A DNA stretch of 64,000 nt from Paraphysomonas bandaiensis (lineage: Eukaryota; Protista; Chrysophyceae): NCBI GenBank assembly GCA_965644295.1, contig CBFFRP010000207.1:6282-70281 (forward strand). Reading direction: 5' to 3'. Positions 14,851 to 22,380 of the stretch are shown here, piece after piece. The translations under genes and the position numbers were made by a program. Position 1 is the stretch's first letter, and each line of letters begins with the position of its first letter. Under the pieces are notes generated by a model. That model saw only the letters and a list, made by a program, of their open reading frames with translations. It did no database searches and had not been told where the DNA came from.

Positions 14851-15941
14851 ATGTTACTTAGCAGGGAGGTTTCCTTTTCAAATGACGTGTTTTCCCAGCG
14901 GAAGTATTCCGTGTTTGCTGGTGCTGGATATGAGGAGTTAGGTCAACGGCTCCAGGTGCTCCAGGTGAGACCCTCCCACACATATACACACATACATACA
15001 TACACATATAGACAGTCATATTAATACTGTCACAGCCAGGGAGATTTGAATATTACCACACGAGTTATGATAAATTTCCGGATGGCACTGATAACATAAC
15101 TCTCTCCGGCTTCACTCCCACTAACGTCATTGCTGGGTCTCATGTTTTATTTCTGGCATCTCTTCTGAATAATGATGCGACTGTATCGCAAATATCTGTT
15201 TTAATTGTGTTACTTCAAAGCTTTATAAAGAGCTTGACTATCGTGATGCCGTTTTACCCCGCTGGTACTATGGATAGGGTTGACGTTGAGGGTAAAGTGG
15301 CAACTGCTAATACACTCGCGATGATATTTAGCTCCCTACCGAGTTGTGGGAAACCGGCCCGTTTAATGATATATGATATCCATGCTCTTCAAGAGCGATT
15401 TTATTTCCATGGCTCTGTTATTCCAAGCCTGCACACTGCCCTTCCTTTACTGCTCCCGAAATTACGTGAACATAATATCAGTGCAGTGGCATTTCCTGAT
15501 GACGGGGCGGCCAAACGATTTGGCCATTTTTTCTCTAGTAATGGGTTTAATATAATTGTGTGTGGTAAGGTGCGGAATGGAGACACACGTATTGTTACTA
15601 TACAGGATGGGAATCCGAATGGATGCAAAGTGGTAATTGTAGATGACCTAGTGCAAACAGGTGGAACCATATACAAAGCTGGCCAGCAGCTTATGAAATC
15701 TGGTGCAACACAGGTGTTTGCCTATGCCACTCATGGAGTCTTTCCCGAAAATTCCTGGGAAAGATTTCTTTACCCCGTCTCACAGGACAACTCCACTCCA
15801 TCAACCTCCGAAAGAATATTTGAGAAGTTCTGGTTTACGAATAGCATACCACACACTGTATCACGAGTACCATCAGACAACGTCTTTGAGGTTATTGACT
15901 TACTACCACAGATAATATCTGATCTAGAGTTCAGGAGTTAA
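14851..15941 (+). CDS. Ribose-phosphate pyrophosphokinase (PRPP synthetase), class II / plant PRS3-4 type
   Basis: KFPDGTDNI, VMPFYPAGTMDRV, DIHALQERFYF, AFPDDGAAKRF, VVIVDDLVQTGGT, ATHGVFP; one intron at about 14965-15035. Confidence 0.92.
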
Positions 15942-17301: not shown

Positions 17302-17790
17302 CTAACTAGAAAATCTATATGACAATGAACACAGCCAGTGCAGAACATGCGGGTGTCCAAACACAGCAGCAGACGTTTGGCAAGCGTGTATATCCCATGG
17401 ACATGGAGGGTCCTGTGAACGAAGCCACTGCAGAATATCCAAGTTTCTACCCCTAGCAGCAGCTTGGCAGGTCGATGTATCCCAGGGACATGGAGGGTTC
17501 TGTGAACGAAGCCATTGTAGAATATCTAAGTGTCCACTACCAGCAGCATCATGGCAACTACATTCATCCCAGGGACATGGAGGGTCCTGTGAACGAAGCC
17601 ACTGCAGTACACCCAAGTGTCCACCACTAGCAGCACCACGGCAAGTACTTTCATCCCAGGGACATGGAGGGTCTTGTGATCGGAGCCACTTCAGTACACC
17701 CAAGTGTCCACCACTAGCAGCAGCATGGCAAGTACTTTCATCCCAGGGACATAGATGGTCCTGTGAACGAAGCCAGGCATGTATGTGGCA
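17302..17790 (-). pseudogene. 5'-truncated ankyrin-like repeat gene fragment (WLRSQDPPCPWD repeats, 81-bp units)
   Basis: Five to six 27-aa repeats of the form CxxAAxxGHLxVLxWLRSQDPPCPWD; no convincing start codon or N-terminal domain. Confidence 0.7.
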
Positions 17791-18481
17791 TATAAGAAGT
17801 ACCGATCTTACACCGAGATAACTTCTGCTGTATGATACAGACACAGAGGGTATATATACTAATTATTTAACCCAAAATATATTTTCTTTACATCGCATTA
17901 TTCACTAATACATGCATTATTAACATATAGCATTGACGCTCTTATGTGTTAGTCCATGTTCGGACCACTGGGCACAGCTGTAGTATTGCTATAATACACC
18001 AGTATATCATATAGCAGTATACACACATATACGCACTGTAGTATAGGAGGGCTCTAAAAAGGGTACGAATGCAAGTGTATAGGAACCCTAGCATAACACA
18101 CTGAGTACAAGATAATATGTAAGTATTCAGAGCTAACTAAATAACCTATAGCGATCCTAGTTAAGCAAAACGTTTTTTTTACCCTAGGGATGAAAAAGTC
18201 CACTTGTCATGTCGATAAGAGACACTAAAATGACTGTTTTTCACAACCGCGTGCCAAAAAAGCAGATATTTTTCTTTTCACTATTTTTTGTTCACAACTC
18301 TTGCTGGAAATTCGAACCCAACTAACGTTTTTAGCTGCATTATTATCACACTATGATACAATACTTATACTTACTTCCAACTCATCACAAATGAACTCCC
18401 TCACAGTAGAAACACCTCGAAACCAACACAACCTGAACATACATTCACTATCTGAGTGCTGTCCGCAATTTTCTTCTTTAG

Positions 18482-21264
18482 ATGAATAGTCCATTAAACG
18501 TAGCAGCAGCAGGAGGGAATCTCGCAGCTGTTAAGCGTTTATTGATGAATGGAGCAAATGGAAGTGCCGTGAACGGCCAGACACCGCTTCATTGGGCAGC
18601 ATGTAGACAGAGTTTTACGAAAAAAGAAGGAGATTTTGTGAGTGTGATGGAATGTTTGCTAGATCATGGAATCCCCATCAACGAAAGAGACAATGAAGGA
18701 TATACTGCTCTTCACAATGCGGTGATGTATTCTATGCCGAGTGACACTCATGCCATTCTTCGACTCCTTTTGCAACGAGGTGCTGATGCGACCATCAGGT
18801 CGCACACCGGCGAGACACCATTCGACTGTGCCGAAAGTGAAGATGTTCGTAATTTCCTAAGGATGCATGGTGCGGCTCCTTTGCCAGTTGTAGAAGAACA
18901 AATCATCGAGGTGTGTATTCCGGTGGTTATCACAGGATGCATGTGTTTGGAGAGAATAGTCTCATACTATGTTATTGATGGGCATAGATTGTAAGTAATA
19001 GTATTATATTGTGTTTATTTGCACGATAGGTACGAGGTGTAGAAGATAGAGTCCAAGAATTGAATGACACTGAGGCGGCACTTCTAGTTGCAGCTCTTGC
19101 AGCCTCGGAGGAGGAGTATGAGCGTGCGACGACTGCCAGGAGATTACAACAAGAAGCTGAGGAGAGAGAGAGGCAAGAAGAGGAGGTCTTGAGAGAGAGA
19201 ACTGCTCGCCAAGCAGTGGAGAAGAAGGAGGAAGATGAGAAGGAACACGCTTTGCGGGTTGCTATAGATACAGTATTATCGGGTGGAGCACCCGTCTCCT
19301 TGCCCTATGATCTTGTTCGTAAGTGGACTGGTGGGTTCAAGAACGAACTTGATAGGGGTGCTTATGGAATAGTTTATAAGGGATTGGTGACGTTTGCGGA
19401 CGTTGAAGAGTGTGGAAGCGCAGGCGGTGATCATGATGTAGCAGGTGGACGATATGTTGCAGTGAAGGTTTTCAACACTGAAATGTTGACTGATTTTGTC
19501 GGAGTGGGTGAAAATAAACCAGATATTGATATGGTTAATGGCGACAGTAGTAAGAATAGGATGTTGGAGAGCGCATCCAGGGAAATCAATATATTGAGCA
19601 CCTTTAATCATCCAAACATCATCCGATTACTTGGATATACACTCCCTGCTGTCGATGTGCTTCCTGCGCAAGGGCTAAACAACATTTGCCTAGTGTATGA
19701 GTATGCCTCGAGAGGGGGGTTACATAATGTCCTGAAGGATGATACACAAGCATCAGAGTTGCCCTGGTTCCAACGGGTTAAAATTGCACTTGGTGTGGCA
19801 AAAGGTTTGGCGTACATGCATCACAGAGATGCTAATCGACCTGCTTTCCATCGAGACATAAAAGCTGCCAATATTGCTCTTACCAGTGGATTAACCCCTA
19901 AAATTATTGATTGTGGATTGGCGAAGTACATGCCAGAAAAAGAAACAAATATGAAAGGTCCTACATCGATTCACTCCATGACTGGAGCTCGGTTTGGGAC
20001 TGTGGGATACATGTGTGAGAAATATTGCAAAAGGGCAGAGATGTTGTTTGATGCAAAGTGCGAGATTTTTTCTTTTGGTATTGTCTTATTGGAGTTGTAT
20101 TGCGGTGAGATTCAAGGAAGCAATAGTGAACTCAATCTGGAAGAGATGTTAGATGATGAGGACGATATGATATCTGCTGACCAGCGCGCCGGATCATGGC
20201 CGGAGGAGGCAGCCAGCTTGTACCTTGAACTGGCTTCGGAATGTGTAGCCAAGTACTCAAAACGAAGGTCAAACATGCGTTCTGTAGTGCAATCTCTCTC
20301 TCGTATACTGGCACTTCACCAAGTAAGCACTTTAGAGTCTTCACTCTTACAACTACGTGATCAATTGACGGCCAAAAATGAGTTATTATCATTGAAGTTG
20401 GATGTTGCCGACCGACTGTCTTTGGAGTCTATGCATAACTGTATTGTTTGCTTCAATACTTATCCTTTGAGCAAGGGAGTAATGTGTCCTAGAGAGAACG
20501 TGGAGGATTTGAATGAGTGTCATTTCTTTTGTGATGAGGATTTCAGTGACATGATTAGTTCTCAAAGCTCTGATATTGGTCAGTTCATCAAATTTGGCTG
20601 TAAGATTGTCTGTCCGATGTGTCTGGCAGTGCCTGTACCGCAGGGTGAAGTTCAGGTTCAAACCCAATTGCCTCTATCTGCTCATGCCACAGAGGAAGCA
20701 TTATCATCATATATTGAAGCGTGTAGAAGGGCTGATCGAGACCTTGAAGACAGAAAGAATGCAGTAGAGCGGGCTAGAGATCAGGAGAGACATATGGACG
20801 AAATGCAGGCGTTGAGAGAGGAAATGATGGAAAACAAGACAGCGAAGCTAGCTGCCTCTGCTGAGCGTCATCGACAACGTATTATCAATGATATTCTTAC
20901 GCTAAAGTGTCCACATTGTGGGCTTACTGTCTTCGACTTTGATGCTTGCTTCGCTGTACAGCATTCTCCAGATGCCATGCGAGGTCACGGTCAGGGCTGT
21001 AGTAGATATTTCTGCGGGTGGTGTTTAGCGCCAAGTGAAGGGTCGGCAGCTTGTCACAGCCATGTCAAAGTATGTCCCGCTGCCCCTGCACAAAGACGAG
21101 GAAGCTGGAATGGTAATATGGATGAGTTTAATGTTGTTCATGGACAACGACGGCGAGCAGCAGTGTTACAATACTTGGCTGACCGAGTGCCAAATTTGGA
21201 GGAGAAGACTGCAGTTTGTCACGCCATTGCATGCGACTTGAACGATTTGAACATCTATCTGTAA
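18482..21264 (+). CDS. Ankyrin - UIM - Pelle/IRAK-like (TKL) kinase - RING - Rcat/IBR-like fusion protein
   Basis: Ankyrin GQTPLHWAA, GYTALHNAV and GETPFDCA; intron 18911-19030; LLVAALAASEEE; kinase motifs RGAYGIVYKG, VAVK, HPNIIRLLGY, HRDIKAANI, DCG, GTVGYM; CIVC...CPMC; CPHC...C...CSRYFCGWC...H...C. Confidence 0.85.
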
Positions 21265-21293
21265 AGGGTTTTGAATCAGTTCTGTTCTATCTA

Positions 21294-22380
21294 CTAACTG
21301 AACCACCTACAGATAATAATAACATAATTACAATTTAACAAAATATTAAATACTTGAAAAAATACACATGAAGAAGAGTTCCCGCGCCAAAATATATAAA
21401 TAGAATGTGCGTTGATATGTACATGCGTTGATATGTACAGAAATAAATTGACTGAATGATCACCAACAATATCAACAACTTCGCATCCGATGTATGATTT
21501 ATCTTTGTTCGTTATGCTGGGCAATTTAGATTTAGAATCCACACAGCTGGCGCTTCTCCTTATTGCCATGTCCGCCATTTTCTTTGCTTCCTTCTTTGAT
21601 TCCTGATTTTCAGTCAATGAAGCAACAAATTGACGCATACAAGCGACTTGACTTTCATTTGAAGAATCGCCAAGGGCTTCTATGAACTCTTCAAAGGAAA
21701 TAAACCCTGACTCATCGGCATCAACTCCCTTTAAAAATTGTAGAGCATCAGAAAAGTTATCAAATAAACCTATTTGATGAAATCGTCCGCTGCTCTGTCG
21801 AGACGAATACCACCAGTGGCTTCATGTTCTGACCCATTCACCTCACGACGTGATGAGTACCAAGCCCAAAAGACACGAAACTCTCGTTTAGTGAGCCTGT
21901 ACACTGGTTTTCCGTTCCGCTTCTCAAGCCACTTCTTCCAGTTGTATTGTTGTAGATTTAAGCGATTTTCTTTTTCTATTCTTTTCTGTTTGCTTCCTTT
22001 CTTGAAGCATTGATTTTCAAAATTTACTTTTATTTGTCTGAACTCTGCTTTTATCGAAGCTTGTCTTTTGGATGAAACGGTGGCATGCTTAGCATTTACG
22101 ATGTTCAATCTCGTTGACCTTGCTGTATCTCCAGGCAAGCGCAAATTTCCTTTAGATTGAACTCGATAAACTTGAGTTTTGATTCCAGTGCTAATGTCTG
22201 GTAAAAATGATATCCCAATTGTGGGTCGTGATGGTTTCAGATTGATTGTTTTGTATTACGTTTCGATAACGTTATTGTTCTGGCGTCAGGTTTAGGATGT
22301 CGGGTAGTTGTTTTCGCAACACCTTCGATGGCAAGAGTCAAGATTTCCTAGGCGGTTCCTTGATGATTTCAACACAGAAT
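21294..22380 (-). CDS. EF-hand protein, frameshifted in this assembly (boundaries approximate)
   Basis: Canonical EF loop DADESGFISFEEF at about 21685-21725, in frame with ORF 21294-21638. It joins ORF 21770-22144 only through a 1-nt shift in an A-run at about 21772. Confidence 0.55.

Follow-up and report, generated by a model that had tools for sequence, protein, structure and literature searches.

The gene described here lies at positions 18482 to 21264, on the forward strand, of a 64,000-nucleotide (nt) stretch of the Paraphysomonas bandaiensis genome (Chrysophyceae; GenBank assembly GCA_965644295.1, contig CBFFRP010000207.1, positions 6,282 to 70,281), which we refer to as the window and whose first letter is position 1. 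Our analyses lead us to favor, with moderate confidence, the reading that it is a single expressed gene of two exons whose product, a cytosolic protein of 887 residues, combines ankyrin repeats, a protein kinase of the RLK/IRAK type, and a ubiquitin ligase that derives from the RBR family, lacks the middle IBR domain, and would act by a cysteine relay. An initial annotation, made from the letters of the window, had proposed such a one-chain protein and had quoted from it ankyrin repeats, the string EAALLVAALAASEEE, a charged helix, LPYDLVRKWTGGF..LDRGAYGIVYKG, DCG, CEK, HFFCDED, and CPHC..DACFAV..CSRYFCGWC, all of which are present in the translation, as is CPMC.

The coding part of exon 1 (143 codons) runs from the ATG at 18482 to 18910, the intron of 119 nt occupies 18911 to 19029 (GT at 18911, AG at 19028-19029), and exon 2 extends from 19030 to 21264, with 744 codons at 19030-21261 and the stop codon TAA at 21262-21264. 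The two exons are in frame across 18910|19030, and the frame is unbroken through all of exon 2. As the initial annotation had supposed, the ankyrin exon is part of the same transcript as the kinase and the Cys-rich module, because a complete open reading frame (ORF) of 889 amino acids from transcriptome MMETSP1103 (P0001; taxon 36769, Paraphysomonas, a chrysophyte) and contigs from two public sequencing runs join the exons. P0001, which turned up when the C-terminal region was used in a word search, agrees with each exon at 99% identity and has ...EEQIIE|VRGVED... at the junction; it served as the stand-in for the joined protein, while the exons themselves were searched separately. When public runs were compared with 18300-21500, single contigs of runs X1 and X4, which come from two studies and whose label as RNA is a guess (probable RNA), each crossed the splice and skipped exactly 119 nt. 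The X1 contig (record 1, 2830 nt) was placed on 18351-18908 and 19028-21299 with 0 differences, and the X4 contig spans 18385-21268. On the X1 contig, the spliced transcript extends over 18351-21299, with a 5' untranslated region of ~131 nt and a 3' untranslated region of ~35 nt, these being contig ends that may differ from the RNA ends. The intron is retained in DNA run X14, and exon 2 is covered by poly(A) marine metatranscriptomes. The splice first placed at 18910/19031 is real, judging by P0001 and the X1 and X4 contigs, but its acceptor lies one base earlier, at 19030.

Two side observations concern these transcripts. One poly(A) metatranscriptome contig (run X5, record 4; 19013-19234) begins 17 nt inside the intron and continues into exon 2; unspliced pre-mRNA, carry-over of DNA, or an internal start could each account for it. 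A 6-nt insertion, GATATT, behind 19521 is present in the MMETSP strain (run X4) and in marine metatranscriptome X5 and is missing from the window and from run X1; it adds Asp-Ile to an insert in the kinase N-lobe.

The C-terminal module opens with a zinc domain of the RBR RING1 type (20440-20622, C-x2-C-x11-C-x11-H-x2-C-x2-D-x23-C-x2-C), continues with a two-helix hairpin in the position of the IBR (20692-20898), in which the motifs H..E.Q and RHR.RI are conserved and zinc ligands are absent, and ends with a zinc domain of the Rcat (RING2) type (20908-21075, CPHC-x9-C-x4-H-x11-C-x4-C-x2-C-x9-CHxH-x3-C) and a conserved helical tail, placed at 21118-21246 by an AlphaFold2 (AF2) model. Across the family to which the module belongs, the pattern is C-x2-C..C..H-x2-C-x2-C..C-x2-C, then ~90 helical residues, then CPxC-x9-C-x4-C-x2-C-x4-C-x2-C..H-x-H-x3-C, and again the helical tail. 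The Asp of HFFCDED (20539-20541), which had been noticed as a replacement for one Cys ligand of RING1, stands at a metal-ligand position, the sixth, because at least 90% of the 94 aligned members have Cys in the same column.

By profile-profile alignment with hhalign, we compared the parts of the module with separate profiles for RING1, IBR, and Rcat. These profiles came from five canonical RBR genes that Pfam IBR_1 had picked out in the same genome. The first zinc domain matches RING1 with a probability of 94.2 (E 1.1e-7), against 0.4 for IBR and 7 for Rcat, and the last zinc domain matches Rcat with a probability of 94.1 (E 1.3e-7), against 40 for IBR (E 3e-4) and 2 for RING1. The helical linker between them matches none of the three (probability below 0.1 in each case), and no IBR zinc domain was found between RING1 and Rcat, either by hhalign at this level or as a conserved set of Cys/His ligands. 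When the whole family profile was aligned with the whole canonical RBRs of the genome, the probability was 95.4 (E 1.8e-8, 171 columns). The earlier proposal that the module is an RBR-like ligase without its middle domain is therefore borne out at the level of profiles, since RING1 and then Rcat are recovered domain by domain and the linker matches nothing. The same holds for the position of the putative catalytic residue, which the initial annotation had placed after the first CxxC of the Rcat: the candidate Cys (TGC at 20947-20949; residue 640 of exon 2 and 783 of the protein) lies nine residues after CPHC, aligns to the catalytic Cys of GCNHMTC in the canonical Rcat, and does not vary in any of the 94 members, where eight other ligands are enough for two zinc ions.

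Structure models point the same way. A first AF2 model, made from 10 sequences, had a mean predicted local distance difference test score (pLDDT) of 73.7, with ~50 over RING1, and all its Foldseek matches were above E 0.06. A model from a 94-row alignment reached a pLDDT of 93.4 and a predicted template modeling score of 0.83 and places RING1, the hairpin, and Rcat in this order, in answer to the doubt first voiced as to whether the Cys cluster would model as such a domain. In the IBR position it has two helices, H95-138 and H143-163 (pLDDT 93-97), and the tail is formed by helices H237-259 and H263-279 (pLDDT 97-98). About 40 of the top 50 Foldseek matches in the PDB are RBR ligases, with a complex of the RNF216 RBR, E2-ubiquitin, and ubiquitin as the best match (E 2.5e-3, probability 0.92) and HOIL-1, RNF144A RING1, and parkin also among the leading ones. 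Comparison by VIA gave Z 7.9 over 208 residues for the RNF216 chain; RING1 with its helix gave Z 6.0-6.8 against parkin, ARIH2, and RNF144A (root mean square deviation [rmsd] 2.5-4.0 A, 81-90 residues), and Rcat with its tail gave Z 4.9-5.2 against RNF216 residues 647-772. Neighbors in the ESM Atlas, by features and by shape, were RBR, IBR_1, and Rcat_RNF216 clusters, haptophyte hypothetical proteins, and one Nucleocytoviricota cluster. These models support the sequence result and are no proof of it.

The kinase domain (19300-20319; Pfam Pkinase 2.8e-29) lies between the ankyrin repeats and the ligase module and was assigned to the RLK/Pelle/IRAK type by the initial annotation, which agrees with a PDB sequence search. 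Among the 60 distinct PDB sequences listed, the best 59, at 95.9 to ~60 bits, belong to RLCK/RLK kinases of plants or to IRAK1, IRAK3, and IRAK4, and MLKL, at 59.9 bits, is the first entry from any other family; the leading RLCK/RLK structures score 95.9 to 87.6 bits, IRAK1 84.9, and IRAK4 82.6. Upstream of the G-loop, LPYDLVRKWTGGF..LDRGAYGIVYKG is in the style of RLK/IRAK kinases, and one relative (P0020) has been named 'interleukin-1 receptor-associated kinase 4' by JGI. By its best solved relatives, the kinase thus belongs to the RLK/Pelle/IRAK type of the TKL group; it is not an IRAK proper, as Pfam finds no death domain and only ankyrin repeats before the kinase. The G-loop is at 19348-19383, and all five of the residues expected of an active kinase core that we followed are present, namely the catalytic Lys (VAIK, 19465-19467), the alphaC Glu (19582-19584), the HRD Asp (19855-19857), the catalytic-loop Asn (19870-19872), and the Asp of DFG, here DCG (19909-19917); CEK takes the place of APE (20014-20022). 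Two Cys residues flank the activation segment, one in DCG and one in the position of Cys-Pro, and are kept in 39 and 40 of 48 kinase-linked members, and a redox or regulatory role for this pair is possible.

Several observations weigh against the favored reading and have to be set beside it. The module alone has no Pfam match, the C-terminal 304 residues together with ten relatives returned only noise, a PDB sequence search with the module, as a single sequence or as a 10-row profile, gave no match, and IBR_1, run over the whole genome, misses the Rcat of the window even at E 1, while it matched the paralogues L003 and L006 below its cut-off. Ligand 6 of RING1 is Asp, Rcat has His as its ligand 4, with an 11-residue insert after it, and the candidate catalytic Cys is in CFA, not C-x-H, so that there is no His at Cys+2. 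The structural matches all fall short of the usual marks of significance (Foldseek E 2.5e-3, VIA Z below 8), and we do not lean on structure alone, because an unbiased VIA search with the first model had unrelated helical proteins on top (Z 5-6.4) and RNF216 at rank 37. Docking of the RING1-like domain with an E2 of the same genome scored 0.34, against 0.00 for the best control, which is graded as weak support: 51 of 78 solved complexes reach the pass mark, as do 2 of 108 mismatched pairs, and scores of 0.60 or less include only 5 of the 78 solved complexes but all 4 mismatches that passed. At least 95% of the contacts are shared between the docking runs, and the partner has a pLDDT of 86. It is conceivable, but in our view unlikely, that the zinc module is catalytically dead or a RING-type ubiquitin ligase (E3) only, in which RING1 would be an ordinary RING, a scaffold, or a dimerization element, the Rcat-like domain would be an IBR-type knuckle, and the Cys would be structural or redox active. 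IBR and Rcat share a fold, which fits with the residual profile match to IBR given above, and with the first model it was the parkin IBR, not the parkin Rcat, that showed the closest local fit (rmsd 2.5 A over 45 residues, 31% identity), alongside 1.7 A over 38 residues for the HOIP Rcat; the missing His and the ligand swaps of the window copy would also suit a domain without catalysis. Against this, the domain begins with a CPxC ligand pair like that of Rcat, whereas the IBR of the canonical RBRs of this genome opens wider (CPNESC in L010); the extra Cys that follows the pair at the spacing of the canonical Rcat is surplus to eight-ligand zinc binding; and in the paralogue L002 the same domain stands after a true IBR, in the position of RING2. 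Moreover, the nearest solved RBR, RNF216, is an active transthiolating ligase with an active-site Cys at 688 (PMC9834252).

A somewhat less remote possibility, which we still regard as improbable, is that the kinase domain is a pseudokinase that phosphorylates nothing and serves as a regulatory or substrate-docking part of the ligase. The change of DFG to DCG, the loss of the APE Glu (CEK), the Asp in place of the first Gly of the G-loop, and a 30-residue insert that separates strand beta3 from helix alphaC all speak for it and against an active enzyme, and loss of kinase activity appears to be tolerated in the family, because 8 of the 48 kinase-linked relatives have Asn for the DFG Asp. On the other side, the window copy retains the five core residues, and most relatives keep them as well (Lys in 41/41 aligned members, Glu in 38, HRD Asp in 48, Asn in 47, and DFG Asp in 40 of the 48). 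DCG occurs in 39/48 of these members, and Cys-Pro replaces the Ala-Pro of APE (40 and 31 of 48), a degree of conservation that marks the pair as a clade signature, not as random decay. Judging from these residues, the kinase of the window is probably active. That the fusion itself is an artefact of assembly or annotation, with two or three adjacent genes merged in the reading, seems very nearly out of the question. The frame of exon 1 does stay open into the intron (an ATG-started ORF covers 18482-18994), and the metatranscriptome contig that begins at 19013 starts within that intron, but the complete 889-amino-acid MMETSP ORF covers the whole protein, the single contigs of X1, free of differences, and X4 cross the splice and cover the full coding length of the gene, and the frame is continuous over the entire second exon.

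If the favored reading, a kinase joined to an RBR-derived cysteine-relay ligase, is correct, the module might work as follows. The RBR-type RING1 would recruit a ubiquitin-charged ubiquitin-conjugating enzyme (E2), and Rcat would accept the ubiquitin as a thioester on the invariant Cys and hand it on to the substrate. In solved RBR complexes, the E2~ubiquitin is bound by RING1 and the donor ubiquitin by Rcat together with the helix that precedes it, and an allosteric ubiquitin lies on the RING1-IBR helix, paired with a strand of the IBR (PMC9834252). The module keeps a long helix after RING1 and a helix before Rcat, and the helical hairpin would take the place of the IBR, so that the relay may proceed as in RBRs while its control by allosteric ubiquitin would be altered or replaced. 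It counts against such a close parallel that the IBR, which supplies the strand of the allosteric ubiquitin site in the solved RBRs (PMC9834252), is the very part that is missing here. Recurrent fusion of the module to kinases suggests phosphorylation control or substrate capture by the kinase: the kinase could switch the ligase on, or it could mark or hold the substrates of the ligase, and such coupling could substitute for the allosteric ubiquitin switch of the RING1-IBR interface.

The module is not confined to this gene. An exhaustive profile search returned 2372 cluster representatives at an E value of at most 1e-3 and 1309 at an E value of at most 1e-10, a set whose taxonomic range is only sketched, the source organism being named for few members, Paraphysomonas and Pythium. 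In a set of 48 long family members, a kinase is present in 30, ankyrin repeats in 3, and helicase domains (DEAD/HA2 or UPF1-like) in 2; 6 reach IBR_1 (best 8.2e-7), and 3 hit Pfam IBR. Single members combine the module with ankyrin repeats, leucine-rich repeats (LRR), and a kinase, with MORN repeats and a kinase, with a PX domain, or with an ALK/LTK glycine-rich domain. Those members that have names are annotated as 'hypothetical protein' in Pythium or automatically as 'serine/threonine protein kinase' and 'IRAK4'.

The family profile also finds five further places in this genome (L002-L006). One of them, L002 (G000:C236:133950-137309), encodes a DEAH11-type KH domain, RING1, and a true IBR in one exon and the Rcat subtype of the module with its helical tail in the next, in RING2 position (A2 profile, E 2.3e-21), and the ancestor of the IBR-less module may have looked similar. 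L003 (G000:C447:15013-18393) has a Cys-rich N-terminal region, a RING1-like domain, a helix, and a Rcat-like domain with an intron just before it (IBR_2 5.3e-5); its Cys-rich region looks NFX1/ZNFX1-like by eye, and Pfam found no NFX1-type finger in it. In L004, L005, and L006, a different kinase precedes the module, and the best solved relatives of the L004 kinase are MAP2K-like kinases, S6K, and STE20. On the evidence of these sequences, the module is fused to kinases of at least two unrelated classes. L004 (G000:C453) and L005 (G000:C618), both of which consist of a kinase, a RING with a long insert, and a Rcat-like domain, have identical scores and match lengths and are probably haplotigs or a very recent duplicate. 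We also entertain, as a bolder idea that is unlikely to hold, that the cassette of RING1, hairpin, and Rcat is a separate and widespread class of cysteine-relay ligases in which a domain fused in cis, mostly a kinase, replaces the IBR switch, and that the members with ankyrin, LRR, MORN, and PX domains would form a protist repertoire of one-chain sensor-kinase-ligase proteins.

Of the known systems, human RNF216 (TRIAD3; PDB 8eb0, 7m4m/n/o) fits the module as a whole best in structure, sharing RING1, the helix that follows it, and a Rcat with a helical extension (Z 4.9-5.3), and it is not known to have a His at Cys+2, which the module also lacks. Where the module has two helices, RNF216 has a true IBR between RING1 and Rcat, which helps to form the site for allosteric ubiquitin (PMC9834252); it carries neither a kinase nor ankyrin repeats, and its sequence identity to the module is 10-16%. 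The canonical RBRs (Parkin, HHARI/ARIH1, ARIH2, HOIP, HOIL-1, and L010-L015 of this genome) match in the RING1 fold and the following helix, with an rmsd of 2.5-3.2 A over 80-88 residues, and share the ligand pattern of Rcat and the position of its catalytic Cys, with profile-profile E values of ~1e-7 to 1e-8, whereas the module of the window differs in the absent IBR, the Asp and His ligand swaps, and the 11-residue Rcat insert and is missed by the Pfam RING and IBR models. DEAH11/DEAH12-type RBR helicases, represented here by L002, share the Rcat subtype, including its C/H-x-H-x3-C end and helical tail, but L002 keeps the order RING1-IBR-Rcat, with a DEAH11-type KH domain and no kinase. Our guess is that the Pythium proteins P0079 and P0119 are members of this type.

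In the pathways of IRAK/Pelle with Pellino/TRAF6 and of PINK1 with Parkin, a kinase controls or feeds a ligase on a separate chain, whereas in the window an IRAK/RLK-like kinase and the ligase are one polypeptide. A kinase and an E3 in one chain are not new, as Arabidopsis KEG provides a precedent that also includes ankyrin repeats (PMC3697954, PMC5385374). KEG has an ordinary RING, in the order RING-HC, kinase, ankyrin repeats, HERC2-like repeats (PMC3697954), while the protein of the window has the order ankyrin repeats, kinase, RBR-like module, and Pfam found no HERC2-like repeats in it. In the open-access literature, including that on protist RBR architectures and on the accessory domains of oomycete and diatom kinomes, neither an RBR without IBR nor a fusion of a kinase with an RBR came to light, a negative that falls short of proving absence; the architecture, whose earlier characterization the initial annotation had named as a way for its proposal to fail, thus does not appear to have been described, KEG differing in both E3 type and domain order.

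The N-terminal part of the protein consists of three ankyrin repeats (~18494-18829) and a Glu/Arg-rich charged helix, read from the sequence at 19108-19278, and would presumably be the partner-binding part. Pfam matches on exon 1 are Ank_2 (1.7e-22, residues 5-106), Ank (2.8e-18, three stretches), and Ank_5 (residues 59-116). The ubiquitin-interacting motif (UIM) that had been proposed at EAALLVAALAASEEE (19072-19116) is at most a putative one. It fits phi-x-x-A-x-x-x-S-x-x-acidic by eye only, Pfam gives no UIM match even at E 10 (HMMER filters drop weak short matches), and the string is not found in P0002 or P0003, the nearest relatives, which have different N termini and of which P0002 is 87% identical to the gene within the module. 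In 81,211 residues of fetched proteins, a loose UIM core pattern occurs 14 times and a stricter form with upstream acidic residues once. The motif is thus a pattern match, and one that is not conserved. Nor did the analysis lend support to the earlier suggestions that the ankyrin repeats act as a sensor and that the protein serves immune or stress signalling.

Elsewhere in the window, an ORF on the reverse strand (17302-17844) encodes ankyrin-type repeats with the unit WLRSQDPPCPWDE.TC..AA.GGHL..L (Ank_4 2.9e-13) and is probably one exon of a larger gene. On the forward strand, an ORF at 15207-15941 has weak matches to phosphoribosyltransferases and PRPP-synthetase-associated proteins, just under the Pfam cut-offs. 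The segment 24001-26000 has a GC content of 0.565 and a GC skew of -0.32, while the rest of the window is at a GC content of ~0.42.

RBR ligases are defined by three zinc domains, of which the IBR takes part in the allosteric ubiquitin switch of every solved member (PMC9834252). More than 2000 sequence clusters that combine RING1 and Rcat with helices in place of the IBR would amount to a natural experiment on what the IBR is needed for and on how else RBR ligases can be controlled. With two unrelated kinase classes on the same module, the interplay of phosphorylation and ubiquitination can be tested directly within a single recombinant protein. The family assignment also gives a name to many proteins now listed as 'hypothetical' or 'serine/threonine kinase' in chrysophytes and oomycetes and probably in haptophytes and giant viruses. 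If the bolder idea of the cassette as a ligase class of its own is true, its members would do in a single polypeptide a job that is split between separate proteins in the IRAK-Pellino/TRAF6 or PINK1-Parkin pathways.

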